A stretch of 64,000 nucleotides of DNA, taken from Trichosphaerium sp. ATCC 40318 (Eukaryota > Protista > Tubulinea). The position numbers and the translations under genes were made by a program. Under the pieces are notes generated by a model, which was not told where the DNA came from, made no database searches, and saw only the letters and a program-made list of their open reading frames with translations. The stretch covers positions 31,008-95,007 of the forward strand of contig JALMLS010000355.1 in the NCBI GenBank assembly GCA_038496445.1. Reading direction: 5' to 3'. Every line of letters starts with the position of its first letter. The first letter of the stretch is position 1. Shown here one piece after another: positions 38,084 through 64,000 of the stretch.

Positions 38084-40373
38084 TTATTTTGGAACAGAAG
38101 CGATTTTCACTTCCTTGGTTCGTAACGTATAAGGGTAAATAGCTTGTCTCAACTTAGGTACAAAGAATGCAACAATCAGAGCTACAGCAATCTACATAAA
38201 CTTTAGTTTGTAAATCAAAAGATACAACGTACAAGTACAAGAATACCAAATGTAACACCTAATGCTATCCCAACATTTGCTGATCCTTTTTTATCATCAC
38301 ACCTATCAGATCTTGATGTGATCACGACAACACTTGCAAAAATTAGTGATTAGTGAAAGGTAGTAATAGTTTGGAAACCATACGATGAAAGAGTCTGCTC
38401 AAGCTCTGCCAACACACATTCTGGTGAAAGAACTGTAAAAGTACCATTGATACAGTTACTGTTGCTTCGTATTACTTCTCTTCTTGTCTCACCAACACTT
38501 GTACTATTATCACGTGTGAGGTCTATAATGAATGTTGTATTTGGTGGTATAACAATACATCCTAACAAAGAAAATGAGTGTAAAAGAAAACCTCTTGCCA
38601 TACCTTCAACTTGAAGAAAGCCACCAGGAATAATTGTAGCTGTGTCTGAGTTAACAAAGTCACCATTTATTGTCAAACGACCAGACAGCACTATTTCAGG
38701 TGGGAGAGTACCCACTGTTGGTGCGGGTGTTGGAGGAATGAAAGTTTTGCCTTCACAAGTAACTATTCAACATTGTAAGCGAGCGAATACAGTATAAACT
38801 ATACCATTAGCTTGACAATCTACAAAATATGTGGTGATATCAGAGTAGCTGCAGCCACATGTAAGATTGGTTGGTGTTGAAGGACAATCAAAAACACCTC
38901 CAGTATCTATTTCATAATTAGTACAATACAATTGCTTGTGCAGTACTATTGTTGAGGCTGTTTTCGAATGTTGTTGTATTTCTAAACATGACATTTAGTA
39001 TTCTTACTGTGTTGTTAGTTAGTGTACCTGATTGTAATGTCCATGGAAGAGCCAATCATTGCAGGGGATATTGTAGTTGTTGAATTATTTTGTACTTGTT
39101 TTCTAGAAGTAGGAATCAGTTATTTCAGTTGACTATTTAATTTAGTAGAACATTACACGCATGTAGTATTCTCAAATACACATGAATCTATGTCTGCTGA
39201 TCCACCGTTCGATATGCTCTCTAAAACCAACACTCCGACTATTACAGGTGATTAATATGGCGCTTGGATAGAACACGTGTACCAGTACATCTGTCCTCAA
39301 AAGGCTCAACTTCTTCCATAGTATTTCCAATAAAAGTAGAATTTAATATCTGTACATCATCTGAATTTAAGTATACTAGCGAAGCAGAGTATGCATTCAT
39401 TGCTATAACATAAGTTCGAACAAGTGCGATTGCATGTATTGTACCTTTTCTTGTTGAAACTATGTAATTGTCCTTGAACAAACAAGAGTTGATTACAACC
39501 TAAACAAACTTTAGCAGGTTCAAACAAAAATAAACGTACTTTAGGGACACTAATGAACGTAGCAATAATTCCTTCCCCAAACAATTATCATCAAAAAACT
39601 ACGATTTATATTACCTTGTCCTTCCATTCTGTCAAAAAACAACCCTCCTCTGATATTGTGAATGAATTTACAGTTGATCACTGATACTGTTTCCGCTGTT
39701 TCAATCCATAATCCCAAAGGGTCAGCAAGTCTTACTATATCCTCAATCTCTTGAAAAAATGAATCGAGTACAGCAACGTTTCGGCTGTTTACTATTTAAC
39801 ACAAAGACGAATTTAATTATACGTGCCTATCAACTACTTGCATGAATGCTCTGTTGCCTTTAACTACCATATTCCTAACCAAGCGATCAATCAATAACAA
39901 AACGCTTTTGTAAAATCAATGTAAGGTTTGTACTCTAAGGTAACATTTTCAAAGTTCAGAAATCTTATTTGACAACCCTCTAGCGTAAATCCTGATAGTG
40001 ATATACTTAGGTTTGGTCCATCTAGCGCGGCTTGAAGTGCGCACGATACAGTTATACCCATACCAAGTCCTATAACGTATTATAATCCATGTAACTGCTA
40101 TCTCTTTACCATCGATATGTATGCTTTCCGAAATTTGGTTCAGAATTGTAGCAAACGTTAATCCAGTAGAATTGAGAATAAGTGTTGTTGGCGCTTCCTC
40201 GAGATAACAACCCATATTATCACCACAAACATGTTCACTTGAAGTTATGACTAATTTGGTAAAAATTAGCGAATGCCCTTTTGGTTGAAAGTAATCGTAC
40301 TTGTGTTGCCGTTGGTTGGTACCACAAATGCGAAAATCAAGAAGACGATACAGAAATAAAACAAGCTCATCAT
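38084..40373 (-). CDS. Single-pass surface protein with beta-helix-like repeats, copy A (divergent, shortest stalk)
   Basis: MMSLFYFCIVFLIFAF signal; VxxxNCxFxxN / xxSCxFxxN coils; PPTPAPT stalk; GDFVN..GGFLQVEGC..CINGTF..C domain; TM; tail VPKLRQAIYPY..SVPK*. Confidence 0.8.
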
Positions 40374-40749
40374 TAACGTAGGTTATACGCTGTATAGGTG
40401 TTAAAAGGTAGAAGAAAGTAAAGATTATTTAGTAAAATAAAAAATAAACGCACGTGATACTTCGGCCAACTATTTTAGAAAAAATGAATTCTACGCTATT
40501 GTGATTTGTTATAATTTTAGTTTTCGCTCCCAGACGCGCTACTACTTGATCTCTCGTTAAACCGGGATTAAAAAAAGCCGCGGCAAAATTAATACTTTGA
40601 CAACAAAGAAAGTAACATTTGACTTCAAACAAAACCATCCACACGTTTGTGTCTGAAAGTAACCCTTGTTGTGAGGTTTTTTTGTTTATTCTTGGGCAAA
40701 GTCCAAAGATAAAAAATCGATTGGGACGATGAGTATTTTAGTGTTAGGT

Positions 40750-43147
40750 TCAAACAGAAGATATTTCTACTTCCTTGGTTGTTAAAGTATAAGGGAAAAT
40801 GGCTTGTCTCAACTTAGGTACAAAGAATGCAATAATCAGGCCTACAGCAATCTACCATACAAATTTAGTTTGCAAAAAATAAATGAAAACAAGAAAAAGA
40901 AATGATCATTCACATACGAACACAAAAATCCCGGCTATGACACCTAATACCAAACCAACGGGTACTGAACCTGTTTCATTATCACAACTATCAGCTCTTG
41001 ATGTGATAACAATTATGCTAACAAAAGTTAGAGATCAGTGCAAAACTAAAAAGCATACGATGAAAGAGTCCGCTCAATTCTCGCCAATACACATTCTGGT
41101 GAAAGAACTGTAAAAGTACCATTGATACAGTTACTGTTACTTCGTATTACTTCTCTTCTCATCTCACCAACACTTGTTGTGTTATTATCACTTGTGAAGT
41201 CAATGATGAACGTTGTATTTGATGGTATCACAATACATCCTGAAAAGGAAATGAGAATTAACCAATAAACAGACAAATGAAAACTACAACGTCATACCTT
41301 CAACTTGAAGAAAGCCTCCTGGAGCGATTGTTGCTATCTCTGAGTTTACAAAGTCACCATTTATTATCAAAGGACTAGACAACACTATTTCAGGTGGTAG
41401 ACTACCCACTGTTGGTGCGGCTGTAGGTTCGAAAGTTGGTGCAGTTGTAGTGGTTGGTGATGTTGTTGGAGGAATGAAAGTTTTGCCTTCACAAGTAACT
41501 ATTCAACACTGTAAGCAAGCAAATACATAATACTGTACCATTAGTTTGACAATCTACAAAATGTGTGGTGATATCAGAATAGCTGCAGCCACATGTAAGA
41601 TTTGTTGGTGTTGAAGGACAATCAAAAACACCTCCAGTATCTATTTCATAAATTAGTACAATACAATTGCTTGTGCAGTACTATTGTTGAGGCTGTTTTC
41701 GAATGTTGTTGTATTTCTAAACATGACATTTAGTATTCTTACTGTGTTGGAAATAACATATTAGTTAGTGTACCTGATTGTAATGTCCATGGAAGAGCCA
41801 ATCATTGCAGGGGATATTGTAGTTGTTGAATTATTTTGTACTTGTTTTCTAGTAGGAATTAGGTATTTACTAATTAGTTTAGGAGAACGTTACACGCATG
41901 TAATATTCTCAAATACACAAGAATCTATCACTGCTGATCCACCGTTTGATAGACCACGCAAGACCAATGAGCCAACTATAACCAGCAATTAATATGATAC
42001 TTGGCTAGAACATGTGTACCAGTACATCTGTCCTCGATTCTTGGTATTTCTTCTTCCACAGTATTATCAATAAAAGTTGAGTTTATTATCTGTACATCAG
42101 TTGAATTTGCGTATAGTACTGAAACATAGTAATCAAAGTTTGCTATATATAAATGAGAATATAAGTCGACTAAGAGACACATACCACGATCTCTTGCAAG
42201 TACATAATTGTCCTTGAACAAACAAGAATTGATTGTAACCTAAGTAATAAATGCGTGTGAATAAGTTTAGGCTGCTATACAAAGTCACAAAAGTACTCTA
42301 TCAACAGTTCTGAATGTAGCAACAATGCCTATGCTTAAATAGTTACGATCAAACAAAATAAGGGAATCGAATATTACCTCTCCCTGTCATTCTATCGAGA
42401 AGAAGTCCTGCTTTAAAATTATGTTGAAAATGACAATTATTCACAGAAACTGTTTCGACTGTTTCAATCCATAATCCCAAAGGGTCAGCAAATCTTAGTC
42501 GGTCATCGTACAGTTCATGGAAAAGTGAATTGCGAACAGCAGCATTTTGGCTATTTTTCTCATTAAAAGTGACAAAATCGAATAAATCACGTGTACCTGT
42601 CAAATATTTGAATAAAACTCTCTGTGCCTGTAACTACCATATCCCTACACAATCGTCAATAAAAACTACAAACTCTAACGAATGTGAATGTACTCTACGG
42701 TAACATTTGCAAAGTTGTTCAAGCTGATTTTACAACCATCAAACGTAAATCCTGATAATGAGATACTTATGTTTTGATTCCCGTTCACCGTCTGCGTTTG
42801 AAGTGCGCATGAAACATTTATGCCTTTATTTAACGCTAAATAATTTGTTACAAGAACCTTTCAACAGCGTCAACATACCATAAATGTCTATACTTTCGGA
42901 AAATTGAACGAACAGGCTGACAGGAAAAGTTAATCCAGTAGAATTGAGAATAAGCGTGGTTGGTCCTTCGTTCAAGTAGCACGCCATATCAGTGCCACAA
43001 ACATGGTCACTTGAAGTTACGACTAAGATGGTTGGTAAAAATTAATGAAACGTCATATCGCGCTGAACAGGTATTCGTACTTGTGTTACCGTGGGTAGGT
43101 GTGGCAAGAACAAAAAACAAAAAGGCAGTACAGAAATACAAACTCAT
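40750..43147 (-). CDS. Surface protein family copy B
   Basis: Colinear exons with A; leader MSLYFCTAFLFFVLA; tail EVEISSV*. Confidence 0.8.
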
Positions 43148-43329
43148 TACCTACAGCAAGCATAAGTATTATTGGCGCGTAAGAAGGGTTTTTTTTAAGG
43201 TGGGTAGGTGCGGCAAGAACAAAAAAGAAAAAGAAAGTACAGGAATAACGCAAAGTCATTTACTATACCAGGAATAAGCATTATTTGGCGTAATAAAGCG
43301 TTTTTTTAAAAGGTAATCTTTTTTTTTTA

Positions 43330-43345
43330 AAACGCACGTGATGCT
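43330..43345. promoter_or_regulatory. Conserved CACGTG (E-box-like) site upstream of the surface-protein leaders
   Basis: aaacgCACGTGat conserved ~70-80 bp upstream of a leader ATG at 40451, 43335, 47024, 52393, 53411 (inverted) and 61036. Confidence 0.6.
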
Positions 43346-43508
43346 TTCCAAAACTATACCAAAATAAAAAAGGTGTGATACGTTCTCATTAGTTTTGTTG
43401 GACCTCTCATTGTTTTTAACTGCCCAAAGAACCTCGATCACGATACTATCACGCTTTGTGTACAAAAAAGTGGAAACAAGAGCTTGGCAGGCTGAGGACA
43501 TGAGACTT

Positions 43509-43608
43509 CAAGCTAGAATTATGTTTATGGCAGAGATGACTCCTTGAGGTACTTTTGAGACCACCTCCGGAAGTTCAAACGGAGTTTCCACGAGATCGCT
43601 CTATCCAC
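43509..43608 (-). mobile_element. Short remnant of the same non-LTR element as 48730-49630
   Basis: ~100 bp closely matching 49531-49630 (caagctagaattatg...gagtttccacgagatcgctctatccac). Confidence 0.6.
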
Positions 43609-44558
43609 TTAATAAATACGCTTACGCCTAGAGCGTCCTGTACTTGCCAAATAAAAGTAAATTTACAATACACGAAAATCGTTAAGAAAGTTCTTCGCTT
43701 AAAAATTAACACAGCCTTGCGTAAGCAGTATGAACAACAGTTTATTGGTTTGTAAGTAGACACCATGTTAAAACACATTTAGGTGGCTTATTATTCGTTG
43801 CTTTTGGTAAAATACGTCATTAAAGTGCGTGTCAAGGAGTTTAAGAATTGTTTAAAGCTGTTCGTCTTCATTTTGCCACATACACTTATATCGCTTGAAT
43901 CTGTTCATGACGCGTACTAATACGCGTACAGCGTAGCATACATACTCTGGATAGAAGTTGCAACAAGTACAACTAAAATACTACATGTGATGTTCAATTA
44001 TTGTCATCACCCGCAATGTACTACTCACGTGGCATCGACAGTGTTTAGTAAATGTCATTGTACTAAAAAGTAAAGCGTCCAACAAATGGCAGGTAGACTA
44101 TATTTGATTGCTGGTATGGCTAGGTACCATTAGCGTTGTATCTAAAGAGACAAAACACGTGGTCAAGTTTCTTTTTGTGGTTCACTGGTGATTGGGTTTA
44201 ACTCTACTTTCTGTGTTAACTTTTTCATTACATTTGCGTGCACGCGTCCATTCTACATTAAAACTGACCCCACTTGTGTCACTCTTCCATGCTATGTGAT
44301 AAGTTTTGTTGTGGCAAAATTGACAAAAAAATTTGATATAGTTACACGCTTCTTTCATGGGTAGTGGACAAAATCTAATTTTCTGTTGTACAAAAGATAA
44401 AAAATGGGGTATCTGACCACAGAGCGAAAGAATACACCAAGTTTTGACATAGCTTTGACATTTGACAAAATTTTTTGACATTTTACATTGCGGAAAAAAG
44501 TCACTTTAATTTGAATGACAGAAGATCGATTGGGTCGATAAGTATTTTACTGTTAGGT

Positions 44559-46950
44559 TCAAACAGAAGATATTTCTACTTCCTTGGTTGTTAAAGTATA
44601 AGGGAAAATGGCTCGTCTCAACTTAGGTACAAAGAAAGCAATAATCAGGCCTACAGCAATCTACCATACAAATTTAGTTTGCAAAAAATAAATGACAACA
44701 AGAAAAAGAAATGATCATGCACATACGAACACAAAAATCCCGGCTATGACACCTAATACCAAACCAACATTTACTGATGCTCCGCTATCACAACTATCAG
44801 CTCTTGATGTGATAACAATTATGCTAACAAAAGTTAGAGATCAGTGCAAAACTAAAAAGCATACGATGAAAGAGTCCGCTCAATTCTCGCCAATACACAT
44901 TCTGGTGAAAGAACTGTAAAAGTACCATTGATACAGTTACTGTTACTTCGTATTACTTCTCTTCTTGTCTCGCCAACACTTGTTGTGTCATTATCACTTG
45001 TGAAGTCAATGATGAACGTTGTATTCGATGGTATCACAATACATCCTAAACATCAGATTAACCAATAAACGTGTGCTAAATAACTTGTGATACAAGACAT
45101 ACCTTCAACTTGAAGAAAGCCTCCTGGAGCGATTGTTGCTATCTCTGAGTTTACAAAGTCACCATTTATTATCAAAGGACTAGACAACACTATTTCAGGT
45201 GGTAGACTACCAACTGTTGGTGCAGCTGTAGGTGATACAGTTGTCGGTTCAACTGTTGGTGCTGTTGTAGGCGATATTGTAGGAGTGGTAATGAAAGTTT
45301 TGCCTTCGCAAGTAACTATTCAACATTGTAAGCGAGCAAATATAAATAATTTATACCATTAGCTTGACAATCTACAAAATATGTGGTGATATCAGAGTAG
45401 CCACATGTAAGATTTGTTGGTGTTGAAGGACAATCAAAAACGCTTCCAGTATCTATTTGATAAATTAGTACAATACAATTGCTTGTGCATTACTATTGTT
45501 GAGGCTGTTTTCGAATGTTGTTGTATTTCTAAATACGAAATTAAGTATGCTTGACGTGTAACAATAGAGTACCTTATCATAAAGTTCATATCAGAGCCTA
45601 TCAATGCTGGGGATCTTGTAGTTATTGGATTATTTTGTACTTGTTTTCTACGTTGGATCAGTCATCAGTTATTGGCTATTAAATTAAGGAGAACGTTACA
45701 CGCATATAATATTCTCAAATACACAAGAATCTATCACTGCTGATCCACCGTTTGATAGACCACTCAAAACCAATGAGCCAACTAATAGGCAATTAACATG
45801 ATACTTGGCTAGGCGTGCGTACCAGTACATCTGTCATTGATTGGTTTTTCTTCTTCCACAGTATTATCAATGAAAGTTGAGTTTATTATCTGTACATCAG
45901 TTGAATTTGCGTATAGTACTGAAACATAGTATTCAAATTGTGCTATATATAAATGAGAATATATGAGGACTAAGATTCACATACCACCTCTTGCAAGTAC
46001 ATAATTGTCCTTGAACAAACAAGAATTGATTGTAACCTAAATAATAAATGCGTGTGAATAAGTTTAGCTGCTATGCAAAGTCACAAAGTACTCTATCAAC
46101 AGTTCTGAATGTAGCAACAATTCCTATGCTTAAATAGTTACGATCAAACAAAATAACGGGAATCAAATATTACCTCTTCCTGTCATTCTGTGCAGAAGAC
46201 TTCCTCCTTTATAATTATGTTGAAAATGACAATTATTCACAGAAACTGTTTCGACTGTTTCTATCCATAGTCCCAAAGCTTCGGCAAATCTTCCTCTGTC
46301 ATCGTACAGTTCTTGGAAAAGTGAATTGCGAACAGCAGCATTTCGACTATTTTTCTCATTAATTGTGACAAAATCGAATAAATCACGTGTACCTGTCAAA
46401 TATTTGAATAGAACTCTCTGTGCCGGTAACTACCATATTCCTACGCAATTGTCAATTGATCAATAAAACTAGACTTGTAATGTGAATGTACTCTACAGTG
46501 ACATTTGCGAAGTCGCTCAATCTGATTTTACAACCATCAAACGTAAAGCCTGATAATGAGATACTTATGTTTTGAAACCCTATCACCGTTTGCCTTTGAA
46601 GTGCGCATGAAACATTTATGCCTTTATTTAACGCTAAATAATATGTTACAGAAACGTCCAAAAGCGTCAACATACCATAAATGTCTATACTTTCGTTGAG
46701 TTGGGCTTGAAACAAGCCGGCAGAAAAATTTAACCCAGTAGAATTGAGAATAAGCGTGGTTGGTCCTTCGTTCAAGTAGCACCCCATGTCAGTGCCACAA
46801 TCGTGGTCACTTGAAGTTACGACTAAGACATTTGGTAAATATTAATAAAACGTCATATTGCGCTGAATAGGTATTCGTACTTGTGTTACCGTGGGCAGGT
46901 GCGGCAAGAGCAAAAAAGAAAAAGAAAGTACAGAAATAACGCAAAATCAT
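44559..46950 (-). CDS. Surface protein family copy C
   Basis: Colinear exons; leader MILRYFCTFFFFFALA; tail EVEISSV*. Confidence 0.8.
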
Positions 46951-47539
46951 TTACTACAGCAGGAATAAGCATTATTTGGCGTAATGAAGCGTTTTTTAAA
47001 AGGTAATCTTTTTTTTAAAAACGCACGTGATGCTTTCCAAAACTATTATCAAAATAAAAAGTGTGATACGTTCTCATTAGTTTTTGTTGGGCCTCTCATT
47101 GCTTTTAACTGCCCAAAGAACTCTTTATCACGATATCTTGAGTTCACAAATTATATCACGCTATGTAAACAAAGTGAAATAAGAACATGCCGAGGATACA
47201 CGAGAGAAGAAGAAGAAGGGAGTTGATATTTACCCGGGAGACCCATGTTGGCTACCTAAAGAGTCATCTATAAGCAGGGTCGGTACTCCTGCGATAGTGA
47301 AGGTTATGTTATACCATTATCATTATGGTGTATGTAATCAGAGTGAATTTGGTGATTCCCAACGCACGTATTGAGTTGAGACGTGTAGTCCGTTTTCTTC
47401 ACAAAGTGAAGCTAGTTTTTCAATTAGACTTTTGATTTGCTGTTGTCATTTTCCTTTTTTTGACTATTTCCAAGGTTCCTCAAGACCGTATTTTAACACC
47501 TACAATCAAAAACTCAACTGATCATAATCTCACATCTCA

Positions 47540-48729: not shown

Positions 48730-49630
48730 CAGTGTGTGCACCACGCGTGGGGCTTCCTAGCCATTTGGTCGAAAATATTTAAGGGAGTCCTCCGTCTAGC
48801 TTAGTGGGTGTATGCATTGCGAGGTGGAGTTGTTAAAGTTCCATCTTAATCCGACGTAGTGTGAAAGCTTGAATCGTTACATTAGCCAGCATGTCCTCGT
48901 AAGTAGCACGTAATTAACTTAGGAACTCGGTCTGGGCCAAGAAAATTATAAGGTCCGATACAGAGGTGAGTTCTGCCGTTAGGGAAAAGCTCTATATAAA
49001 CCTTGACTATCCTACGATCGTTCTTTTTGTTGCTAGGTTATATTATCTTTCTGCTTAATCTAAAACAATTTTTACGATCGTAAAGTGCAACTATTTTGTG
49101 ATACATTGTAAAATTAACTGGAAATGTTTGGTAATTTCTTGATTTATTTATTTGTGCAAGTTCATTTTACAAGTTCTAACTCAATGACTCTTCTTCCTGT
49201 ACATTTCTTAATTAGTTCACGGTCTATTCTTGCGTTTAATAAAACACCGAGTACCAAGACTATATCCTATTGAATGCGACAGCAATATCGAGAATAAAAA
49301 CAATATTAGGATGGCATTAAACTTGAAGTAATTGTCGATTTGATTATTGGAGGAACGAAGCTTATTTTCCTAAAATCTGTCAAAAAACTGTTGTTTAGGG
49401 CGTGATTAAGAGCCCAGTATTCGACTCCCTAACAATTGTTCCCAGTTGAAGACAGAGTCATGCCTTAGAGAAATCTATGTAAATTGCAAAGATATCTTTG
49501 TTGTTTGCTTCAGCATTTTCAATGATACGGCAAGCTAGAATTATGGTTATGGCAGAAATGATTCCTTGAGGTACTTTTGAGACCTCACTTCCGGAGGTTC
49601 TAACTGAGTTTCCACGAGATCGCTCTATCC
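48730..49630 (-). mobile_element. Degenerate non-LTR (LINE-like) retrotransposon, reverse transcriptase region
   Basis: RIIENAEANNKDIFAIYIDFSKA followed by (GCA)TGACTCTGTC, i.e. A(Y)DSV with a 2-nt deletion; downstream VLGVLLN and MHTPTKLDGGL resemble the LINE YLG and P..GGLG motifs. Confidence 0.75.
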
Positions 49631-49914
49631 ACAGCCGAGCTCTTCGCCACTTACCAAATTTTAGCATTAATTCTATTGTTAGTTTATTATGAGGTTTGAA
49701 AAAACGGTTGGATTCGCAACAAATTACCACGTGACAGTGCAAATGTGAGATTTGCAAGTTCTGTCAGCAGTGCCATGTCCGTCAGATTGTCTAAATAGAC
49801 AACACAAAAACCCATTAATTTACAAATACGTTGATCTAGAATTGACAAAAACTTGCAAAAAAAGCCACTTTAAGTTAACTTGAATGATTGATGATAAGTA
49901 TTTTACTGTTAGGT

Positions 49915-52321
49915 TCAAACAGAAGATATTCGTACTTCCTTGGTTGTTAAAGTATAAGGGAAAATGGCTTGTCTCAACTTAGGTACAAAGAATGCAATAA
50001 TCAGACCTACAGCAATCTACCATACAAATTTAGTTTGAGAAAAATAAATGAAAACAAGAAATGTTTTCACATACGAACACAAGAATGCCAAATGTGACAC
50101 CTAACACCATACCAACATTTACTGATGCTGATGCTCCATCATCACAACTATCAGATCTTGATGTGATCACAATTACACTAGCAAAAGTTAGAGATTCAGT
50201 GCAAAGATAAAAGCATACGATGAAAGAGTCTGCTCAATTCTCGCCAATACACATTCTGGTGAAAGAACTGTAAAAGTACCATTGATACAGTTGCTATTGC
50301 TTCGTATTACTTCTCTTCTTGTCTCGCCAACACTTGTTGTGTTATTATCATTTGTGAAGTCAATGATGAACGTTGTATTTGATGGTATCACAATACATCC
50401 TAAATATTGGATTATCCAATAAACGTGTGCTAAATAATTTTTGATACAAGACATACCTTCAACTTGAAGAAAGCCTCCTGGAGTAATTGTTGCTATCTCT
50501 GAGTTTACAAAGTCACCATTTATTATCAAAGGACTAGACAGCACTATTTCAGGTGGTAGACTACCAACTGTAGGTGATACAGTTGTCGGTTCAACTGTTG
50601 GTGCAGTTGTAGGCGATATTGTGGTTGGTGGTATTGTTGGAGGAATGAAAGTTTTGCCTTCGCAAGTAACTATTCAACACTGTAAGCGAGTAAATACATA
50701 ATACTGTGTACCATTAGCTTGACAATCTACAAAATACGTGGTGATATCAGAGTAGCCACATGTAAGATTTGTTGGTGTTGAAGGACAATCAAAAACACCT
50801 CCAGTATCTATTTCATAAATTAGTACAATACAATTGCTTGTGCAGTACTATTGTTGAGGCTGTTTTCGAATGTTGTTGTATTTCTAAACATGACATTTAG
50901 TATTCTTACTGTGTTGTTAGTTAGTGTACCTGATTGTAATGTCCATGGAAGACCCGATCAATGCAGGGGATGTTATAGTTATTGAATTATTTTGTACTTG
51001 TTTTCTAGAAGTCGGAATCAGGTATTTACTATTAAATTTAGGCAGAACGTTACACGCATGTAATATTCTCAAATACACAAGAATCTATCACTGCTGATCC
51101 ACTGTTTGATAGACCACTCAAGACCAATGAGCCAACTATAACCAGCAATTAATATGATATTTGGCTAGGCGTGTGTACCAGTACATCTGTCCTTGATTCT
51201 TGGTATTTCTTCTTCCACAGTATTATCAACAAAAGTTGAGTTCAATATCTGTACATCAATTGAATTTGCGTATAGTACTGAAACATAGTAATCAAAGTTT
51301 GCTATATACAAATGAGAATATATGAGGACTACGATCTGCATACCAGAACCACTTGCAAGTACGTAATTGTCCTTGAACACGCAAGAGTTGATTGTAACCT
51401 AAATAAATGCATGTGTAAATATTTAGCCTATTATACAAAGTCACAAATTACTCTATCAACAGCTCTGAATGTAGCAACAATTCCTATGTTTAAATAGTTA
51501 TGATCAAACAAAATAAGGGAATCAAATATTACCTCTCCCTGTCATTCTATTGAGAAGAACTCCTCCTTTACAATTATGTTGAAAATGACAATTATTCACA
51601 GAAACTGTTTCGACTGTTTCTATCCATAATCCCAAAGGTGCATCAAATCCTCCTGTTTGATCGAACAGTTCATGGAAAAATGAATTGTGAATACCAGCAT
51701 TTTGGCTATATTTCTCATTAACAGCGACAAAATCGAAATAAATCACGTGTACCTGTCAAATATTTGAATAGAACTCTCTGTGCCTGTAACTACCATATTC
51801 CTACGCAATTGTCAATTGATCAATAAACTAGACTTGTAATGAACGTACTCTACAGTGACATTTGCGAACTTGCTCAATCTGATTTTACAACCATCAAACA
51901 TAAACCCTGATAACGAGATGCAAATGTTTTGATTCCCTATCACCGTTTGCCTTTGAAGTGCGCATGAAACATTTATGCCTTTATTTAACGCTAAATAATT
52001 TGTTACAGAAACTTCCAAAAGCGCCAACATACCATAAATGTCTATACTTTCGTTGAGTTGGGCTTGAAACACGACGGCAGAAAAAGTTAATCCAGTAGAA
52101 TTGAGAATAAGCGTGGTTGGTCCTTCGTTCAAGTAGCACTGCATATCAGTGCCACAAACGTGGTCACTTGAAGTTACGACTAAGATATAAACATTAACAT
52201 TAAACAAATGTCATATCGCAATCGCACTATCGCGATGAATAATATTCGTACTTGTGTTACCATTGGTAAGTGCAGCAAGAGCAAAAAAGAAAAAGAAAGT
52301 ACAGAAATAACGCAAAGTCAT
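49915..52321 (-). CDS. Surface protein family copy D
   Basis: Colinear exons; leader MTLRYFCTFFFFFALA; tail EVRISSV*. Confidence 0.8.
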
Positions 52322-52559
52322 TTACTACAGCAGGAATAAGCATTATTTGGCGTAATGAAATTTTTTTCAAGTTTTGCTTTTTTTTTAAAACGCACGTGAT
52401 GCTTTCCAAAACTATACCAAAATAAAAAGGTGTGATATGTTCTCATTAGTTTTGGTTGGGCCTCTCATTGCTTTTACCTGCCAAAGAACCTTGATCACGA
52501 TACTTGAGTGGATAAATTATCACACTTTGTGTAAAAAAGTGAAACAAGGCCGAAGACAT

Positions 52560-52850: not shown

Positions 52851-53485
52851 TGATTTTTTTAACTTAGTGATCTATACCACTTTTTAGTACTTTCCACGCG
52901 TAGAAATAGCGCACTTGAGGTAAACATTTAAACATAATTTTGTAGTTTGATCAGCCGCTGTATTAAAAAATAGTCTCAGACGTTGTGAGGATGTAAAAAA
53001 ATGGTTTTAGGACAAGTGCTAAGGATGTAATTTGCGCCGTTTTGTCTTACCACAAAAGTTTTTTTATCATACAACTTGTTGAATCTATCCATTGGAATAT
53101 CGCTAGGTGCTACAAACAAAAAGCTCCTCCAAATCCTGATTCACCAAACGCTCGTGAATATACATGAATGAATATTAATGAATATGGCTTACAGACAATG
53201 AACATGAATATTGCTTATTCATAACGGAAGAACATTACTACATACAAAAGATTGTTCACACTTCAAGTTCATATAACATGAATAATTGTACACTCCAGAT
53301 ATCGTGTTAAATGAGTGGTAAAGAGCAAGCAGGCGGTTACCTACAAAATCTTTGACCAATCATTGAGAACAGATCACACTTGCATTTTCAACATAGTTTT
53401 CGGATAGCATCACGTGCGTTAAAAAATACCCCACCTTAAAAAACCCTTCTTTACACGCCAATAATACTTATACTTGCTGTAGTAA

Positions 53486-55856
53486 ATGAGTTTGTATTAT
53501 TTCTGTACTGCCTTTTTGTTTTTTGCTCTTGCTGCACCTACCCACGGTAACACAAGTACGAATATTATTCAGCGTACCTGGTTAGTATATGATGAATACT
53601 AATTTTTGCGTCTTAGTCGTAACGTCAAGTGACCACGTTTGTGGCACTGATATGGAGTGCTACTTGAAGGAAAGACCAACCACGCTTATTCTCAATTCTA
53701 CTGGATTAACTTTTCCACTCAACCCCTTTGTTCAATTTTCCGAAAGTATAGACATTTATGGCATGTTGACGCTTTTGGAAGTTTCTGTAACATATTATTT
53801 AGCGTTAAATAAAGGCATAAATGTTTCATGCGCAATTCTACCATTTCAAAGCCAGACGGCGATAGGGAATCAAACATAAGTATCTCATTATCAGGATTTA
53901 CGTTAAATGGTTGTCAAATCAGATTGCACAGTTTCGCAAATGTTTCCGTAGAGTACATTACGAACATTCGCGTTATGAGTCTATAGTTTTATTGATTAAC
54001 TGATCGCTTAGGAATATGATAGTTACAGGCTACAACGGATCTATTCAAGTAATTGCAAGGTACACGTGTTTTAGTTCTATTTAAGGGCGCTCTCTTAATG
54101 TGAAATAGTCGAAATGTTGCTGTAAGCAATTCACTTTTCCATGAACTGTTCTATGACAGAGGATTTGGTGAGCCTTTGGGATTATGGATTGAAATAGCCG
54201 AAACAGTTTCTGTCAATAATTGTCATTTTCATCATAATTTTAACGGAGTAATACTCCTGAACAGAATGGAAGGTAGAGGTAACATTTGGCACCACTTGTT
54301 TCTGTTATAACTCTTTGAGCATAGGATTTGTAGCTACATTTATCAATGTTGATAGAGTACGTTTATGACTTGGTTTTTAAATGCTAAGATCATTTAGGTT
54401 GTAATCGATTCTTGTTCGGACAATCATGTAGTTGCAAGAATAAAGGTATGTACCAGTCTTACATATATACTTATTGGTAAACAGCACAACTCGAATACTT
54501 CACCTCAGTTGTACACATAAATTCAGTTGATATTAAAGTATTAAACTCTACTTTTGTTGGGAACAGTGTGGAAGAAGCTGATCCATTTGAGGACAGATGT
54601 ACTGGTACACGTGGTCTATCCGAGTGACATATTAATTGTGTAATAGCTGGAGCATTGGTTTTGGACGGTGCATCAAGCAGTTCTGCAGTGATAGATTCTT
54701 GTGTATTTGAGAATATTACATGCGTGTAACGTCCCACCTAATTGTAATAGCCAATAACTGAATCTTGTTTAGAAAACTAACAACAATAATACAATCCCCT
54801 GCATTGATTGGATCTTCTATGAGCATTACTATAAGGTACACTACTATTATTGTCTACGCATCAAGAATACTAAATTTCGTGTTTAGAAACACAATATTTG
54901 AAAACAATGGTACGATGTAGTCATGGCAAGTAATTGTACTGATATCTGGAATAGACGCTGGAAACATTTTTGATTGTCCTTCAACACCAACAAATTTCAC
55001 ATGCGGCTACTCTTCTATCACCACATATTTTGTAGATTGTCAAACTAATGGTATGCTAATTGTATTTGCTTGCTGACAGATGTGAAATAGTTACATGTGA
55101 AGTCATTCCAACACCATCACCGACTGCTGCTCCGACAATATCGCCTACGACTGCACCAACAGTTGAACCGACAACTGTATCACCTACAGCTGCACCAACA
55201 GTGGGTAGTCTACCACCTGAAATAGTGTTGTCTAGTCCTTTGATAATATGGTGACTTTGTAAACTCAGAGATAGCAACAATCGCTCCAGGAGGCTTTCTT
55301 CAAGTTGAAGGTATGTTTTGTATCACAAGTTATTAGTACGCGTTTATTGGATAATCTGATGTTTAGGATGTATTGTGATACCATCAAATACAACGTTCAT
55401 CATTGACTTCACAAGTGATAATAACACAAGTGTTGGCGAGAAAAGAAGAGAAGTAATACGAAGTAACAGCAACTGTATCAATGGTACTTTTACATTAGTA
55501 TCACCAGAATGTGTATTGGCGAGAATTGAGCGGACTCTTTCATCGTACGCTTTTTATTTTTGCACAAATATTTACTTTTTCGCTAGCATAGTTGTTATTA
55601 CATCAAGATCTGATAGTTGTGATGATGGAACAGAATCAACAAATCTTGGTATGGTTTTAGGTGTCACATTCGGTATTCTTGTATTGGTACGAATGACGCA
55701 TGATATTTCTTTCTTGTGTATTATTCATGTTAATTTCTATTGTAGATTGTTGCAGCTCTGATTGTCACTTGCTTTGTGCCTAAGTTGAGAGAAGCCATTT
55801 ACCCGTATGATAATACAACGAAGGAAGTAAAAATTGCTTCTATTCCCCCAAACTAA
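53486..55856 (+). pseudogene. Surface protein family copy E, inverted, apparently frameshifted
   Basis: Colinear exons on the opposite strand; GGG AAT CAA ACA TAA (~53878) and ATA ATA TGG TGA (~55250), where paralogs read GNQNIS and LIINGDF. Confidence 0.7.
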
Positions 55857-56959
55857 CAGTACAAGAATCTATAAAACATAACAGAGTCCATTTAAAATTT
55901 GTTTTATTTTTATTGGGCTAAGAGGACTTGCAATGAAAGCTTGATACCACAACGTTGCATATGGAATGAAGCAACAGAAAACCTGCAGCAACTTGTTTAC
56001 ATCTCTACTGTGTGCTGTAGAATGTGTTCTTCAAGTTGTCAAACCATAAGCATTTGCTATATACAATTCTATATACTAGAGAATGCTCCTAAAAAGCGTT
56101 ATTATGCCACTTGAAATGCTTTTTCGTCATTTTTAGAACGTGACAGTAAGGTCTACAAGAAGTTTATGTCGAGTATATGAGCAACAGTTGGTTGGTTGCA
56201 GTGCGCCGCAAGCAAACTGTGCAAATCTACAGGTACACTTTGAGATTTGACTGATCTATTGTCGTTCTCATTCAAGTTTTTCGATAGTCAGATCTGACAC
56301 TTCTGATAATTCTTGCAAATCTCACGTTTTAAGTGATCTGCTCTCACGCCGGTCTAGCAAATCCAACCGTTTCGCCGCACGTGATTTAACAAACACGCAG
56401 CACAATATTTTATTTACATAGTTGACACCCAGCTGCGTTTACAAAGCTACAGCAACGTTGGTAGTGTTTTGGGAGGTTTTAATATTGTACTAAGCTGGCT
56501 TCTGTTTGTATGCTACGAGATGGCTTTTGTTAGCATGGAGTAGGCGCTAGTGTAGCGACTAAACATACATTAGAGTAAACAGTGTTTGAGGCATTCATAC
56601 CGCGTTTGGCGGTAATGTGATACCTTTGAAGGCCATCATTGCTTTTTAATTCGATTTCAGCTCATTGAACACTTGTTGGTTTGATCATACCGTGTACAGT
56701 ACATAGGTAAAATACTGCAATCATGCCATGGTCTATTGAATCTTCTGCTAAAGTTCTAAAAACTCACTTTCTAGAAAATAAAAGTAAAGCTTGAATGAGA
56801 CAGGCAATACGCTCAAGATGTCGCGTTAACCAACGTAGCAGGCGGTTACCAACAAAGCGTTCACCAAAATCACTCAAAACAGATCACACTTTATTTTCAG
56901 TGTAGTTTTCTGAGTTGTAAAAGTTCAGAGGTGACAAATCCTTGGAGCCACGGAAGTTA

Positions 56960-57830
56960 GGTTGGATGTTTTATTTTGTGAGGTACCGTGGTGTTATATG
57001 TGTAGTCTTTATGTTTGGATATCTGGATTACCTATTTTGTTAGTTCGATGAGGTTGTTAGTTGGTTTGGTTTTTCTTTTAGATGCCATTTGTCATTGCAG
57101 ATGTGATTGAAACCACATGTGAGTGCTATATTGTTCTGTGGGGTCTATATCCTATTTTGTTAAGAGTTTTGTGTATGATGCGGTTGTGTAATTTGGCATC
57201 AATTTTTAGTGTTATGTTGGCAACTGCATATGTGCGCAAAGTCTTCTATGATAGGTATGTTGTTCTTTGCATGACATACAGAGGGCGTCTGGGTATTTGG
57301 GTTGGTTGACTAATAGCATATCCATAGGACCTCTTCAAGCCTACCAGAATCCATTAAAATTTGGTTAGCGCTGATTGGAGTTGTTGGTGTATGCGATTTA
57401 GGGTATGTGCACACTCAACTTTGCGTTTTTGTTTTAGGGGGTAGGGCGGGCAAGTTTCAATTCCAAGGATGGCTAATGTAGGAGTGGTTGAAGAGAACTG
57501 TGTTGTTAAACTTGAAGATTGGTTGAGATTATTCCGAAGTAGCTCCTTTGTTTGTTACTGAGCCGTGTGGCAATGAGGTTAAAATCTATGGCTTGGGGCA
57601 TTAGTTTTCGAAGGTTATTTTGTTAATCTTATATCGTATGTGTTCATCGTTTTTGACATTGTTATTGTTGATATGTTATTTGGAGATTGAGGTTTTGTAG
57701 AATGGATGCAGCTATGGGGTTGTGTGATTTGGGTTTGGGTGTTTGTGCGTCTTGTACACTAAAGTGGTGATTAAGTGATTGATTGGGTTAATAAAATTGA
57801 AAGCTGTCACTGGGCTTGACCTCTGATTGT
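56960..57830 (-). mobile_element. Degenerate LINE-like ORF2 3' region (zinc knuckle)
   Basis: Strong G/T skew on + (A/C-rich sense strand); minus strand reads YPDALCMSCKE..(frameshift)..IEDFAHICSCQ, matching the CxxC..E..H...C knuckle of non-LTR ORF2. Confidence 0.55.
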
Positions 57831-58434
57831 TGTTGACGGTACAAAATTTCTAACGTTTCTTGTGTCAAGGAACACATTTCTAACATATGTGGTAACACCT
57901 CTGTTCATGAGCATCCTTAACGTGGTCAACTGTTTTGCGATACATGGTAAAATCAATATAACTGGACATGTTTGGTTGTTTCTAAATATTTAGTGCAAGG
58001 ACATAACTTCAATTACAAGTGATTTTGTTCTTAGAGCTATATAGGACTATGTTTTTTGCCTTATTTTTGGATGAAAATGAGGCTACTGGTTTTCCTCTCT
58101 TCTGGAATGGTTTTGGACGCTCTACAATAGTTAAAGACTGTGAGCAGTAAAACGGAGTTTCCACAAGATAGCACAGCCGAGGTCTCGCCACTTACCAAAC
58201 TTTCGCATAAATTCCATTGTTAGTTTATTATGAGGTTTGAAAAAACGGTTGGATGCGCAACAAATTACCACGTGACAGTGCAAATGTGATATTTGCAAGT
58301 TCTGTAAGCTTGTCTGTATAGGCAACACAAAAACCCATTAATTTACAAACACATTGATCTAGAATTGACAAAAACTTGCAAAAAGTCACTTTAAGTTAAC
58401 TTGAATGATTGATGATAAGTATTTACTGTTAGGT

Positions 58435-60854
58435 TCAAACAGAAGATATTCGTACTTCCTTGGTTGTTAAAGTATAAGGGAAAATGGCTTGTCTCAACTT
58501 AGGTACAAAGAAAGCAATAATCAGACCAACCGCAATCTACCATACAAATTTAGTTTGAGAAAAATAAATGAAAACAAGGAAAAAGAAATGTCTTCACATA
58601 CAAACACAAGAATGCCTAATGTGACACCTAACACCAAACCAACATTTACTGATGCTGATGCTCCATCATCACAACTATCAGATCTTGATGTGATTACAAT
58701 TACACTAACAAAAGTTAGATATCAGTGCAAAGATAAAAAGCATACGATGAAAGAGTCTGCTCAATTCTCGCCAATACACATTCTGGTGATACTAATGTAA
58801 AAGTACCATTGATACAGTTGCTGTTGCTTCGTATTACTTCTCTTCTTGTCTCGCCAACACTTGTGTTATTATCACTTGTGAAGTCAATGATGAACGTTGT
58901 ATTTGATGGTATCACAATACATCCTAAACATTGGATTAACCAATAAACGTGTTCTAAATACCTTGTGATACAAGACATACCTTCAACTTGAAGAAAGCCT
59001 CCTGGAGTAATTGTTGCTATCTCTGAGTTTACAAAGTCACCATTTATTGTCAAAGGACTAGACAACACTATTTCAGGTGGTAGACTACCAACTGTAGGTG
59101 ATGCAGTTGTTGGTTCAACTGTTGGTGCAGTTGTAGGCGATATTGTGGTTGGTGGTATTGTTGGAGGAATGAAAGTTTTGCCTTCGCAAGTAACTATTCA
59201 ACACTGTAAGTGAGTAAATACATAATACTGTGTACCATTAGTTTGACAATCTACAAAATATGTGGTGATATCAGAGTAGCCACATGTAAGATTTGTTGGT
59301 GTTGAAGGACAATCAAAAACGCTTCCAGTATCTATTTGATAAATTAGTACAATACAATTGCTTGTGCATTACTATTGTTGAGGCTGTTTTCGAATGTTGT
59401 TGTATTTCTAAACATGACATTTAGTTTGCTTGCTGTGTTGGAAATAACATATTAGTTAGTGTACCTGATTGTAATGTCCATGGAAGACCCGATCAATGCA
59501 GGGGATGTTATAGTTATTGAATTATTTTTTCTAGAAGTTGAATCAGGTATTTACTATTATATTTAGGCAGAACGTTACACGCATGTAATATTCTCAAATA
59601 CACAAGAATCTATCACTGCTGATCCACCGTTTGATAGACCACGCAAGACCAATGAGCCAACTATAACCAGCAATTAATATGATACTTGGCTAGAACATGT
59701 GTACCAGTACATCTGTCCTCGATTCTTGGTATTTCTTCTTTCACAGTATTATCAATAAAAGTTGAGTTCAATATCTGTACATCAATTGAATTTGCGTATA
59801 GTACTGAAATATAGTAATCAGAGTTTGCTATATACAAATGAGAATATATGAGGACTACGATCTGCATACCAGAACGGTTTGCAAGTACGTAATTGTCTTT
59901 GAACAAACAAGAGTTGATTGTAACCTAAATAAATGCATGTGTAAATATTTAGCCTGTTGTACAAAGTCACAAATTACTCTATCAACAGTTCTGAATGTAG
60001 CAACAATTCCTATGTTTAAATAGTTACAATCAAACAAAATAAGGGAATCGAATATTACCTCTCCCTGTCATTCTATCGACAAAAAGCCCTCCCCTAAAAT
60101 TATGTTGAAAATGACAATTATTCACAGAAACTGTTTCGACTGTTTCAATCCATAATCCCAAAGGGTGGGCAAATCCTGTCTCATCGAACAGTTCATGGAA
60201 AAGTGAATTGCGAACAGCAACATTTTGGCTATATTTCTCATTAATTGTGACAAAATCGAAACAAATCACGTGTACCTGTCAAATATTTGAATAGAACTCT
60301 CATTGCCTGTAACTACCATATTCCTACGCAATAGTCAATTGATCGATAAACTAGACTTGTAATGAATGTACTCTACAGTTACATTTGTGAACTCGCTCAA
60401 TCGGATTTTACAATCATCAAACGTAAAGCCTGATAACGAGATGCAAATGTTGTTATTCCCGTTCACCGCCTGCTCCTGTTCAAGTGTTTGAATTGCGCAC
60501 GAAACAGTTATGCCTTTACTTAACGCTAAATAATATGTTACAGAACCTTTCAACAGCGCCAACATACCATAAATATCTATACTTTCGGAAAGTTGGGCTT
60601 GAAACATGCTGCTAGGAAAATTTAATCCAGTAGAATTGAGAATAAGCGTGGTTGGCCCTTCGTTCAAGTAGCACTCCATATCAGTGCCACAAACGTGGTC
60701 ACTTGAAGTTACAACTAAGACATAAAAATTAACAAACCTTGTCGCGTCATATCGCAATCGCACTATCGCGATGAATAATATTCGTACTTGTGTTACCGTG
60801 GGTACGTGCGGCAAGAGTTAAAAACAAAAAGGCAGCACAGAAATACAAACTCAT
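58435..60854 (-). CDS. Surface protein family copy F
   Basis: Colinear exons; leader MSLYFCAAFLFLTLA; tail EVRISSV*. Confidence 0.8.
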
Positions 60855-62211
60855 TACCTACAGCAAGCATAAGTATTATTGGCGCGTAAGAAGGGTTTTT
60901 TTAAGGCGTAGGTGCGGCAAGAACAAAAAAGAAAAAGAAAGTACAGAAATAACGTAAAGTCATTTACTATACAAGGAATAAGCAGTATTGGGCGTAATGA
61001 AGCGTTTTTTAGAAGGTAAATTTCTTTTTGAAACGCACGTGATGCTTTCCAAAACTATTATCAAAATAAAATTAAAATGTGCAATATGTTTTTGTCACCT
61101 CTCATTTGCTTTTAACTGCCCATAGAGGCTTTATCACGACATTTAGCGGATAAATTATAACACTCTTTTGTGTACCAAAAGTAAATTTGAACGTGAACAA
61201 TCCGCACGCCAAAAGAACGTCACTGGTTGAAAATTACAGATCACTCACATTAAAATGTGGGCCTTACCGGAAAGTATTATGGAAACTTGCCATGTTGAAC
61301 TACTTGAAGAAACCCATTTTGGGTTTTCTAGATTTTCTTTTATTGTTAATGTACTGTTAGTCGTCGATATTATGGCAAAAAAGCTTGAAGAGTACAGATG
61401 CTGATATCACGATTGGTCACTGCAACCATAGCAAACTTATTACGTAAATGTTAGTTATTTTAATCTCAAAATATTCTGTTTTTTGTAACATTTTTTTTTC
61501 TAGATTTGTTTATCTTGGCGTCAGGTAAAGAATCACACATACAAAAGCTTGTTGCTGAGTTTGAGAAATACGATATCCTGTATCATATTTGGTATCATAA
61601 ATATGTACGCTAACTATGTGTATTGTCGGTTTTTATCAGCTTGTGCTCCTTGAGCACTTGCTCATGATGCCTCAGTCTCGCCAACCGTATAACAAGCTCC
61701 GTTTATATGGGAACAGAAGTTACATACATTGTACAACAGTTTTAGGCTGAAAATGTAGATTGCTATCTAAAATCAAGCAACAATACTCTAGACGCCGCTG
61801 CTTACGCGTAGAGAGTGTGTAGGTTTCTACAAAACGCTGTTTAAAACAAAACGGCAATAAAAAGGTAAAACTCCCTAAACTCGCTCAATTATATTCTACC
61901 CCGCATATTTAAACCATATTCTTTATGTTACAGCTATTTGGACCGCCCTAGCCTTTAATGGTTACAAGAAAAATGCCATAGAAAACTCATGAACTGTAAC
62001 AAAAAGTAGTCACGCACATAAACAAGCATGCTTGTACTTAAATAAACAAAACGATCATTGGGTTTTTTTAATCACGTGGGTTACGCTTTCGTAATTATGT
62101 TGCTGAAATTTTGACGCTTGACCTCTAGCCTTCTCTTGACAAGGCTAAACAAATAAATTGCACTGTGAGTAACAAACTTATTCTCAGATATGACAGTATG
62201 TTGTTACAGTA

Positions 62212-64000
62212 TTAGCTTGGAGCAGAAGAGACTTCTAGTTCCTTGGTTCGTAAAGTATAAGGGAAAATAGCATGCCTCGACTTAGGTACAAAGAAAGCAA
62301 TAATCAGAGCTGCAGCAATCTACCATAGAAATTAAGTTGTGCGAAAAATACTGCGATAAAGCAATAAGGAGACATACCAGAAAAAGAATACCAAATATAA
62401 CCCCTAAAACAATACCAATATAGGCTGTTCCGGATGCAGCATCACAACTATCAGACATTGATGTAATTACAAATATGCTAGATGCAAAAGTAAGGAGTTT
62501 GGTATGTAAAGGTTAATGAAGCATACGATGAGAGAGTCTGCTCAATTCTCGCCAATACACATTCTGGTGATACTAATGTAAAAGTACCATTGATACAGTT
62601 GCTATTGCTTCGTATTACTTCTCTTCTTGTCTCACCAACACCTGTTGTGTTATCACGTGTGAGGTCAATGATGAACGTTGTATTCGATGGTATTACAATA
62701 CATCCTAAACATTGGATTATCCAATAAACGTGTTCTAAATAACTTGTGATACAAGACATACCTTCAACTTGAAGAAAGCCTCCTGGAGTAATTGTTGCTA
62801 TCTCTGAGTTAACAAAGTCACCATTTATTATTAAACGACTAGACAGCACTATTTCAGGTGGTAGACTACCCACTGTTGGTGCGGCTGTAGGTGATACAGT
62901 TGTTGGTTCGAATGTTGGTGTGGTTGTCGGTTCAACAGTTGGTGTTAATGTAGGAGCAGTTGGTGGCATTGTTGTAGGAATGAAAGTTTTGCCTTCGCAA
63001 GTAACTATTCAACACTGTAAGAGCAAATACAAAATACTGTGTACCATTAGTTTGGCAATCTACAAAATACGTGGTGATATCAGAGTAGCCACATGTGAAA
63101 TTGGTTGGTGTTGAAGGACAGTCAAAAACGCTTCCAGTATCTATTTGATAAATTAGTACAATACAATTCCGTGTACAATTACAATACCATCGTTGATGGT
63201 TTTTTCAAACGTTGTTGTATTTCTAAACACGAAATTTAGTATGCTTGATGCGTAGAAGTAGTTTACGAATTGTAATGTTCATAGAAGACCCAATCAATGC
63301 AGGAGAGTTTATAGTTCTTGTATCATTTTGTATTTTGCTAAGCAGGAATCAGATGTCTGCTAGTAAAATTAAGGAGAACGTTACACGCATGTATTATTCT
63401 CAAATACACAAGAATCTATCACTGCAGATCCACCGACAAAAACCAAAGCTCCAGCTACAGGAGATTAATATGACGCTTGGCTAGTGCACGTGTACCGAAA
63501 CATCTGTCCTCTGTTGCGTTGCTTTCTTGCACACTGTTCCCAATAAATGATGTGCTGAATAGCTGTACATCAGTTGAATTTATGTATACTACTGATGTGG
63601 GTTGTATATTTGTTGCTGCAAACAAATTAGTTCGGAATAAGTTTCAGTATTGAGGAGTACAATCTGTTGCAACAACTGAATTGCTTGCAAAGAAGCAAGA
63701 AGCAATTATAACCTTAAAATAAGATCAGATTATAGAAACCTAAGTTCACATGCGCACCTTGTCAACACTGATGAACGTAGCAACCATTCCTATGTTCAAC
63801 AATTATGTGATCACAAATTACAATGTTTGCCGAGTATTACCTTTCCCTTGCAACGATGACAGACGAGATCCTCTTCTGTTATTAACTGCAAAGCCACAGC
63901 CATTGACAGATACTGTATCGGCTGTTTCAATCCATAATCCCAAAGGCTCTCCAAATCTTGAAAAGTCTTCCATCTCTTGAAAAACTGAATTGTGTACAGC
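62212..64000 (-). CDS. Surface protein family copy G (5' part outside window; divergent ectodomain, longest stalk)
   Basis: Colinear exons; QEMEDFSRFGEPLGLWIET; tail ELEVSSAPS*. Confidence 0.75.

Follow-up and report, generated by a model that had tools for sequence, protein, structure and literature searches.

Introduction

Trichomonad Pmp-like proteins contain beta-helical repeats with FxxN and GGA motifs, a C-terminal transmembrane (TM) segment and a short tail with endocytic motifs, and they have an adhesive role (PMC6701047). In Dictyostelium, the tgr family (TgrB1/TgrC1) diversifies through duplication, recombination and inversion (PMC12745789). Here, a gene array of the amoeba Trichosphaerium sp. 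ATCC 40318 was analyzed and compared with these two systems. The array lies in a stretch of 64,000 nucleotides (positions 31,008 to 95,007 of contig JALMLS010000355.1, assembly GCA_038496445.1), referred to below as the window, and all coordinates are positions within it. Its tandem genes encode a family of type I surface glycoproteins with variation restricted to loops, and are subject to gene conversion, birth and death. Free-living amoebae must distinguish and grip many kinds of prey and surfaces, and to our knowledge few amoeba surface recognition proteins have been described outside Dictyostelium and Entamoeba. Solenoids with variable loops or strands underlie several unrelated recognition systems, for example leucine-rich repeat receptors, whereas we know of no such receptor repertoire on a beta-helix scaffold in eukaryotes.

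Regarding architecture, the Pmp-like proteins of trichomonads are the nearest system, both being expanded protist families with N-terminal repeats of beta-helical type containing FxxN, a single TM segment and a short tail. The family of the window differs in its extra membrane-proximal domain, its Thr/Pro stalk, its intron-rich genes and a tail motif PY[ST]L in place of NPx[YF]. Membership in Pmp (PF02415) was rejected because both the motif test and the hidden Markov model (HMM) test failed: FxxN occurs 3-4 times, GGA[ILV] is absent and GGSAV occurs once, while Chlam_PMP scored 10.8 bits (E=0.69) on residues 85-325 of P0001, the database homologue described below, and did not reach its threshold of 20.6 bits. 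Regarding behaviour, the tgr family is the nearest. Both families consist of amoebozoan type I surface glycoproteins with duplication, inversion, recombination or gene conversion, and birth and death. The preliminary description of this stretch, made from the sequence without database searches, had called the array analogous to but not homologous with Tgr, and our results are consistent with that view: Pfam matched no IPT/TIG domain, either on the window exons or, at E up to 10, on P0001, and the fold and ancestry therefore differ from those of Tgr. Moreover, tgr diversity is mainly allelic between isolates, whereas the present differences lie between paralogues in one genome, and no partner-gene pairing is evident. 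Proteins of the PbH1/pectin-lyase fold appear alike in their coil repeats, alternating hydrophobic pattern, Asn after the second strand and repeated weak HMM matches, although these matches stay below gathering thresholds and no catalytic signature is conserved. A full-text literature search returned no description of such a beta-helix family in amoebae.

Results and Discussion

Organization of the array

Self-BLAST with one unit identified seven copies from 38.1 kb to the window end (38.1-64.0 kb), one of them inverted relative to the six others, which lie on the minus strand, in AT-rich eukaryotic DNA (window GC ~36%). The expectation of a tandem array of at least seven related genes was thus borne out, but two of the seven are broken. 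Five copies (c1, c2, c3, c4 and c6) encode uninterrupted proteins of 533-555 amino acids (aa), while c5 and c7 do not. The copies are as follows, with the gene model first and the BLAST extent in brackets.

38084..40370, minus strand: c1, an open gene of 16 exons, 533 aa, which diverges most from the other copies, with GC replacing GT as the donor of introns 1 and 4 (38093-40254)
40750..43147, minus strand: c2, intact 16-exon gene, 550 aa, with a 109-bp tandem duplication of the exon-1 region upstream (40725-43443)
44559..46950, minus strand: c3, intact 16-exon gene, 551 aa (44537-47000)
49915..52321, minus strand: c4, intact 16-exon gene, 555 aa, head-to-head with c5 (49880-52371)
53486..55853, plus strand: c5, inverted pseudogene, lacking 1 nt near 53872 (exon 3) and 2 nt near 55248 (exon 13), and with GC as the donor of intron 2 (53434-55861)
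58435..60854, minus strand: c6, intact 16-exon gene, 553 aa, the reference model (58401-61200)
62212..64000, minus strand: c7, truncated by the window end to its 3' two-thirds, exon 5 and beyond, with a frame-breaking 1-nt deletion at the donor of exon 10, position 63267 (62212-64000)

Copy c5 is regarded as a pseudogene because it carries at least two frameshifts together with the GC donor. It can also be observed that the ~109-bp tandem duplication, which covers exon 1 and its proximal upstream region, is present at 43091-43305 for c2 and at ~60800-61010 for c6; the distal copy of the duplication has kept its ATG and lost its splice donor. The 3' flanks of c4 and c6 have a further few hundred bases in common, with similar open reading frames (ORFs) including 49458-49757 and 58131-58328, both on the minus strand, implying that the duplicated unit is larger than the gene. 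One 3'-flank ORF ends in ...AIYIDFSKA, which resembles a reverse-transcriptase motif; it had no match in Pfam.

Exon-intron structure and the database homologue

The splice model was obtained from a DNA alignment of the copies, in which frame-keeping blocks were taken as exons and short GT...AG blocks whose lengths differ by non-multiples of three were taken as introns. The model of c6, whose introns measure 41-82 nt, was derived first and then mapped onto the other copies, and the exons were joined for translation and codon analysis.

60797-60854, 60568-60714, 60372-60525, 60276-60323, 60059-60228, 59978-60009, 59870-59924, 59705-59827, minus strand: exons 1-8 of c6
59579-59660, 59465-59530, 59373-59407, 59236-59331, 58981-59193, 58746-58923, 58602-58704, 58435-58536, minus strand: exons 9-16 of c6

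One plan was found in all copies, consisting of 16 exons and 15 GT-AG introns of 40-82 nt at common positions and in common phases, with nearly all donors and acceptors conserved. The identical exon architecture reported earlier is therefore correct in its general form, but some of the segments then taken as exons actually run through introns 2 (42 nt), 7 (42 nt) and 13 (57 nt), which happen to be in frame in some copies and so misled the reading of ORFs. A coding role for these three introns was rejected, since their lengths vary between copies by non-multiples of three and they are absent from the transcript homologue. The introns are mostly 41-57 nt long and have donors of the GTA type and, in most cases, TAG acceptors; the donor is GC in introns 1 and 4 of c1 and in intron 2 of c5.

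An HMMER search of 1.84 billion representative proteins, using a profile of the membrane-proximal domain built from ORFs that read through the in-frame intron 13, gave exactly one match, P0001 (551 aa, E=2e-28). This protein is encoded on a 1714-nt JGI contig and clusters with P0002, a protein of 553 aa that includes the initiator Met and comes from an MMETSP transcript, which implies that the pair represents intron-less mRNA. P0001 aligns colinearly with the window copies, signal peptide through tail, at 47-49% identity. The splice model is likewise colinear with P0001/P0002: 13 of the 15 junctions are gap-free within six residues, and the other two are located in loops that also carry indels between the window copies. 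The single-exon BTB gene of the window has its best match in the same JGI/MMETSP sample as P0001, at 35% identity. With a match of this level, the source of P0001 is the nearest relative in the database and a different species. The protein family is thus found in at least two amoeba lineages, is older than the split between Trichosphaerium and the source of P0001, and has no assigned family. Word-based searches with P0001, both whole and as residues 24-330, returned only P0001 itself; a scan of JGI metagenome contigs gave no match to the family, and the ESM Atlas gave weak feature matches only.

Protein architecture

Each copy encodes ~550 aa arranged as a signal peptide, coils, a Cys module, a Thr/Pro stalk, a 95-aa domain, one TM helix and a 20-aa tail. 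The ectodomain comprises ~310 aa in roughly ten beta-helix-like tandem coils of ~22-40 aa. The motif xVxIxN(C/S)xFxxN recurs in coils 5-10; after it come a loop and then a third hydrophobic strand (GLWIET, GIVATF, ISVLYA, GSLVLRG, ALIGSS). There are 14-18 N-glycosylation sequons per copy (11 in the partial c7) and 18-20 conserved Cys residues. The parts that follow the coils are positioned in c6 as follows.

59087..59164, minus strand: Thr/Pro-rich stalk, differing in length between copies through in-frame indels
58704..59086, minus strand: conserved membrane-proximal domain of ~95 aa, spanning intron 13 and 66% identical to P0001
58438..58655, minus strand: TM helix, split by intron 15, and 20-aa tail with the PKLR...PY[ST]L motif

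A hydrophobic N-terminus with signal peptide, one TM segment and a short C-terminal tail were all present, as in a type I single-pass protein. The Kyte-Doolittle maximum of 2.98 at residues ~500-540 marks the one strong hydrophobic segment, and the helix predicted by AlphaFold at residues 489-515 of P0001 is the only region above a predicted local distance difference test (pLDDT) value of 65 besides the N-terminal signal peptide. The single-pass topology and the repeat motif given in the preliminary description were accordingly recovered. The term receptor, if understood in the sense of signalling, is not supported, because the cytoplasmic tail of ~20 aa is too short. The membrane-proximal domain had no match in Pfam or the Protein Data Bank (PDB). 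The tail motif PKLR(x4-5)PY[ST]L, at 58438-58497 (minus strand) and its equivalents in the window, is also present in P0001 at residues ~517-551, where the tail is longer than in the window copies (…EMPPIEMPPNKEE).

For the ectodomain, no Pfam family exceeded its threshold. The best score for Beta_helix (PF13229) was 17.0 bits (E=0.0046, exon-5 ORF) against a gathering threshold of 25.9 bits, and sub-threshold matches to it with E of about 0.005-0.08 occurred in exon 5 of four of six copies. NosD (PF05048) reached E 0.013 and 15.4 bits against a threshold of 23.6 bits. All of the sub-threshold matches (Beta_helix, NosD and Chlam_PMP) fall within one clan, that of the pectin-lyase fold, and language-model neighbours of P0001 included Chlam_PMP and Beta_helix clusters at 0.76-0.81. 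A phmmer sequence search of the PDB gave chance-level matches only. Single-sequence AlphaFold2, run without an alignment, gave a pLDDT of 36.7 for P0001 and 32.8 for its residues 40-325, and MAFFT, given P0001 together with 75 exon translations, stacked the repeated coils, and also fragments that are not homologous, onto each other. The proposed beta-helix is therefore probable, on the basis of the repeat motif and the sub-threshold HMM matches.

Variable patches

The differences between copies are concentrated in five short hypervariable (HV) patches, whose positions in c6 are as follows.

60590..60622, minus strand: HV1, NFPSSMFQAQL, loop after coil 1
60449..60496, minus strand: HV2, AIQTLEQEQAVNGNNN, indel-rich loop of coil 2
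60162..60194, minus strand: HV3, ELFDETGFAHP, loop after the second strand of coil 5
60075..60098, minus strand: HV4, FRGGLFVD, equivalent loop of coil 6
59811..59885, minus strand: HV5, LANRSANSDYY, split by intron 7, equivalent loop of coil 7

Every HV string quoted in the preliminary description was found in the copy to which it had been assigned. The clustering of variable columns is pronounced, with a dispersion index of 2.0 compared with 0.74 in 5000 permutations (p<2e-4), and in the four segments named at that time 26 of 36 columns were variable compared with 97 of 464 elsewhere (Fisher p=5e-10). Both tests confirm that the hypervariability is confined to short patches. In each of the consecutive coils 5, 6 and 7, the loop behind the CxFxxN strand carries a patch (HV3, HV4 and HV5, respectively), and HV1 comes after the equivalent strand of coil 1. 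In a beta-helix, the common register of HV3, HV4 and HV5 would align them along one edge. The suggestion that the loops stack on one face consequently stands as far as the position of HV3-HV5 in successive coils is concerned, and as a three-dimensional arrangement it is putative, the AlphaFold2 predictions having a pLDDT of 33-37.

Among c2, c3, c4 and c6, nonsynonymous divergence (pN) was 0.17-0.29 in the patches, 0.04-0.06 in the framework and 0.02-0.04 in the C-terminal part; whole-gene synonymous divergence (dS) was 0.09-0.17 and intron divergence was 0.07-0.10. At the raw nucleotide level, c4 and c6 differ at 35 of 159 patch positions (22%) compared with 5.5% for introns and 3.9% for the rest of the exons. 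For the other pairs the patches differ by 15-21% and the introns by 11-12%, such that over four pairs patch divergence of 15-22% is set against intron divergence of 5.5-12%, a ratio of 1.4-4. The changes within patches consist of tight runs of adjacent mismatches and in-frame indels, and indels are present in these loops of the distant homologue P0001 as well.

Gene conversion and selection tests

Sliding windows revealed mosaic relationships among the copies. Conversion tracts of 160-204 bp with 0-4 mismatches were observed between copies that are 9-24% diverged overall: one of 196 bp with two mismatches between c1 and c4, and others of 160-170 bp with none between c2 and c4 and between c3 and c6. 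The longest is located in c1.

38812..39014, minus strand: gene-conversion tract in c1, matching c2 at 41546-41749, 204 bp including introns with 4 mismatches, where c1 and c2 differ by 22.8% overall

Gene conversion is the reason why the framework and introns look almost identical. It also violates the single-tree assumption of site models, and recombination is known to inflate codon site tests.

Selection was analyzed with our own codon-model likelihood program, on six sequences and 500 codons. In the standard models, M2a against M1a gave a likelihood ratio test statistic (LRT) of 29.4 (p=4e-7), with omega2=5.95 for 4.7% of codons; M8 against M7 gave 37.1, and M8 against M8a gave 28.1. All sites with a posterior above 0.5 in these models were in the helix part, many of them inside HV1-HV5. 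With three site-rate classes added, the LRT fell to 1.6 (p=0.45), and the fit was better by 67 units of 2*delta-lnL for 4 parameters. It should be noted that such a rate-class model has weak power to tell a fast neutral site from a selected one, and the lost signal is not proof that selection is absent. In a partition model with branch lengths in neutral units, omega of the patches was 0.78 (p=0.40 against 1) with a neutral-rate multiplier of 1.82 (p=0.017), and rose to 1.34 when the multiplier was fixed at 1; omega was 0.37 in the framework and 0.24 in the C-terminal part. When five segments were given their own trees, the topologies differed and the LRT was 10.0 (p=0.007), with two sites of posterior above 0.8 (columns 270 and 566), both outside the HV patches.

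The preliminary description had proposed codon site models as a check, and had held that variable sites no more divergent than introns, or a ratio of nonsynonymous to synonymous change (dN/dS) of at most 1, would speak against it. Values above 1 were indeed obtained with standard site models, but the signal was lost with rate classes and became weaker with segment trees, and the patch omega of 0.78 in the partition model did not differ from 1. Similarly, the patches exceed the introns (22% compared with 5.5% for c4 and c6), yet dN/dS within them is about 1. The tests do not show that selection, rather than loose constraint combined with copy-to-copy patching, drives the differences between loops.

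Interpretation of the array

The array represents a real, lineage-specific family of variable surface proteins. Our preferred interpretation, to which a probability of about 0.5 is assigned, is that of a lineage-specific, germline-encoded, glycosylated type I surface family in which a beta-helix-like rod carries a ridge of variable loops, the members being putative binding proteins. Accordingly to this model, a beta-helix-like ectodomain of about ten coils would stand on a Cys module, a mucin-like Thr/Pro stalk and the conserved membrane-proximal domain, followed by the TM helix and the 20-aa tail. The family would have grown by tandem duplication, including one inversion, while frequent gene conversion partly homogenised the copies and some members were lost as pseudogenes. 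Differences would pile up in short, presumably solvent-exposed loops after the CxFxxN strands of successive coils, giving one ridge along the rod, and these loops would change through multi-nucleotide substitutions in clusters and through in-frame indels, at a rate that is roughly neutral or higher. Each copy may then act as an adhesin or ligand-binding protein with a slightly different ridge, for which the most plausible ligands would be glycan-rich, such as prey cell walls or the substratum. The short conserved tail may link the protein to the machinery of sorting or endocytosis and not to signalling. There is no sign of somatic diversification, and somatic or cassette diversification was rejected, as there are no cassettes and every copy is a complete gene.

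Two points weigh against this interpretation. The excess of patch over intron divergence cannot be produced by plain relaxed constraint; selection must be involved, or the patches must have an ancestry of their own that goes further back. In addition, the beta-helix ectodomain is probable, but both the fold and the stacking of its loops are deduced from sequence register only. Concerning the patches, either selection keeps them different while conversion homogenises the rest, or they have a separate ancestry through short templated conversion from other family members or divergence that blocks conversion. The data do not decide among these explanations, because raised synonymous change fits all of them.

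The preliminary description had read the array as a diversified recognition repertoire, in which a ridge resembling the complementarity-determining regions (CDRs) of antibodies is kept different by diversifying selection and serves the recognition of prey, pathogens or self and non-self. Such a diversified receptor is possible, and is put forward only tentatively. The significance of the standard site models, with many candidate sites within HV1-HV5, argues for it, as does the divergence of the c4-c6 patches (22%) beside that of introns (5.5%) and other exon sequence (3.9%), together with a patch pN of 0.17-0.29 that compares with a whole-gene dS of 0.09-0.17; the patches are, moreover, sharp peaks within converted sequence, as expected if selection resists homogenisation. 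However, the LRT drops to 1.6 (p=0.45) under the far better-fitting rate-class model, and the patch omega of 0.78 with a neutral rate 1.8 times higher indicates that synonymous change is raised too. With segment trees the LRT is 10.0 and the sites above 0.8 lie outside the patches, recombination of the kind that inflates such tests is rampant, and only six sequences are available from an array in which two of seven copies are broken. The narrower proposal, that the loop ridge is a germline-encoded CDR-like face held diverse against conversion by diversifying selection, perhaps with short templated patch conversion, as a repertoire for prey, pathogens and kin, is doubtful.

The heavy predicted glycosylation, the mucin-like stalk and the very short tail would also suit structural components of the cell coat (glycocalyx), that is, redundant glycosylated rods on stalks with unconstrained loops, for which a patch omega near 1, the tolerance of pseudogenes and the loop indels in P0001 would be natural. 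Such a role is unlikely, given that patch divergence exceeds intron divergence and that the membrane-proximal domain and tail motif are strongly conserved across homologues of 47% identity, which suggests specific partners and not just a bulk coat. It is very unlikely that the proteins are membrane-anchored polysaccharide-active enzymes (lyases, hydrolases or epimerases of the pectin-lyase fold) whose loops tune the substrate range. Although the weak HMM matches lead to families of a fold rich in carbohydrate-active enzymes, none of them reaches the Pfam threshold, no solved enzyme was matched by sequence, and the His and charged residues of the coils vary across c1, c7 and P0001 (NNCHFQHN in c6; INCKFIHN, NGCGFAVN and ETCSFINN in the others).

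The family couples a solenoid scaffold with sharply localised variation and has one detectable relative among 1.84 billion representatives. If the loops set binding specificity, an array of variable receptors would have been invented independently on a beta-helix, and the genes would also offer a tractable locus, with five intact copies in 23 kb, for the coexistence of gene conversion and diversification. If they do not, it would be another fast-evolving, lineage-specific family of coat proteins.

Upstream motif and neighbouring genes

A decamer, ATCACGTGCG, with a CACGTG core, is located upstream of the start codon in all six copies that have their 5' end in the window, at 40449, 43333, 47022, 52391, 53409 (plus strand) and 61034.

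61034..61043, minus strand: ATCACGTGCG decamer upstream of c6

The decamer also occurs elsewhere in the window, at 56376, 28688, 32226 and other positions. When one mismatch is allowed, 18 occurrences are found in the window compared with 1.7 expected, and the decamer may be a promoter element of Trichosphaerium. Directly upstream of the array, at ~27800-37900 on the plus strand, there are three tandem paralogues that resemble class C G protein-coupled receptors; the ORF at 36671-37003 matches Pfam 7tm_3 (E=3e-10), and similar N-terminal ORFs are situated at ~28.2, 31.7 and 35.0 kb. Genes in the region 1-27000 of the window include a subtilase fragment (1734-2123), a MORN-repeat protein (4925-5581), an ELO fatty-acid elongase (~9200-9960) and the single-exon BTB/KCTD-like gene (21485-22471).

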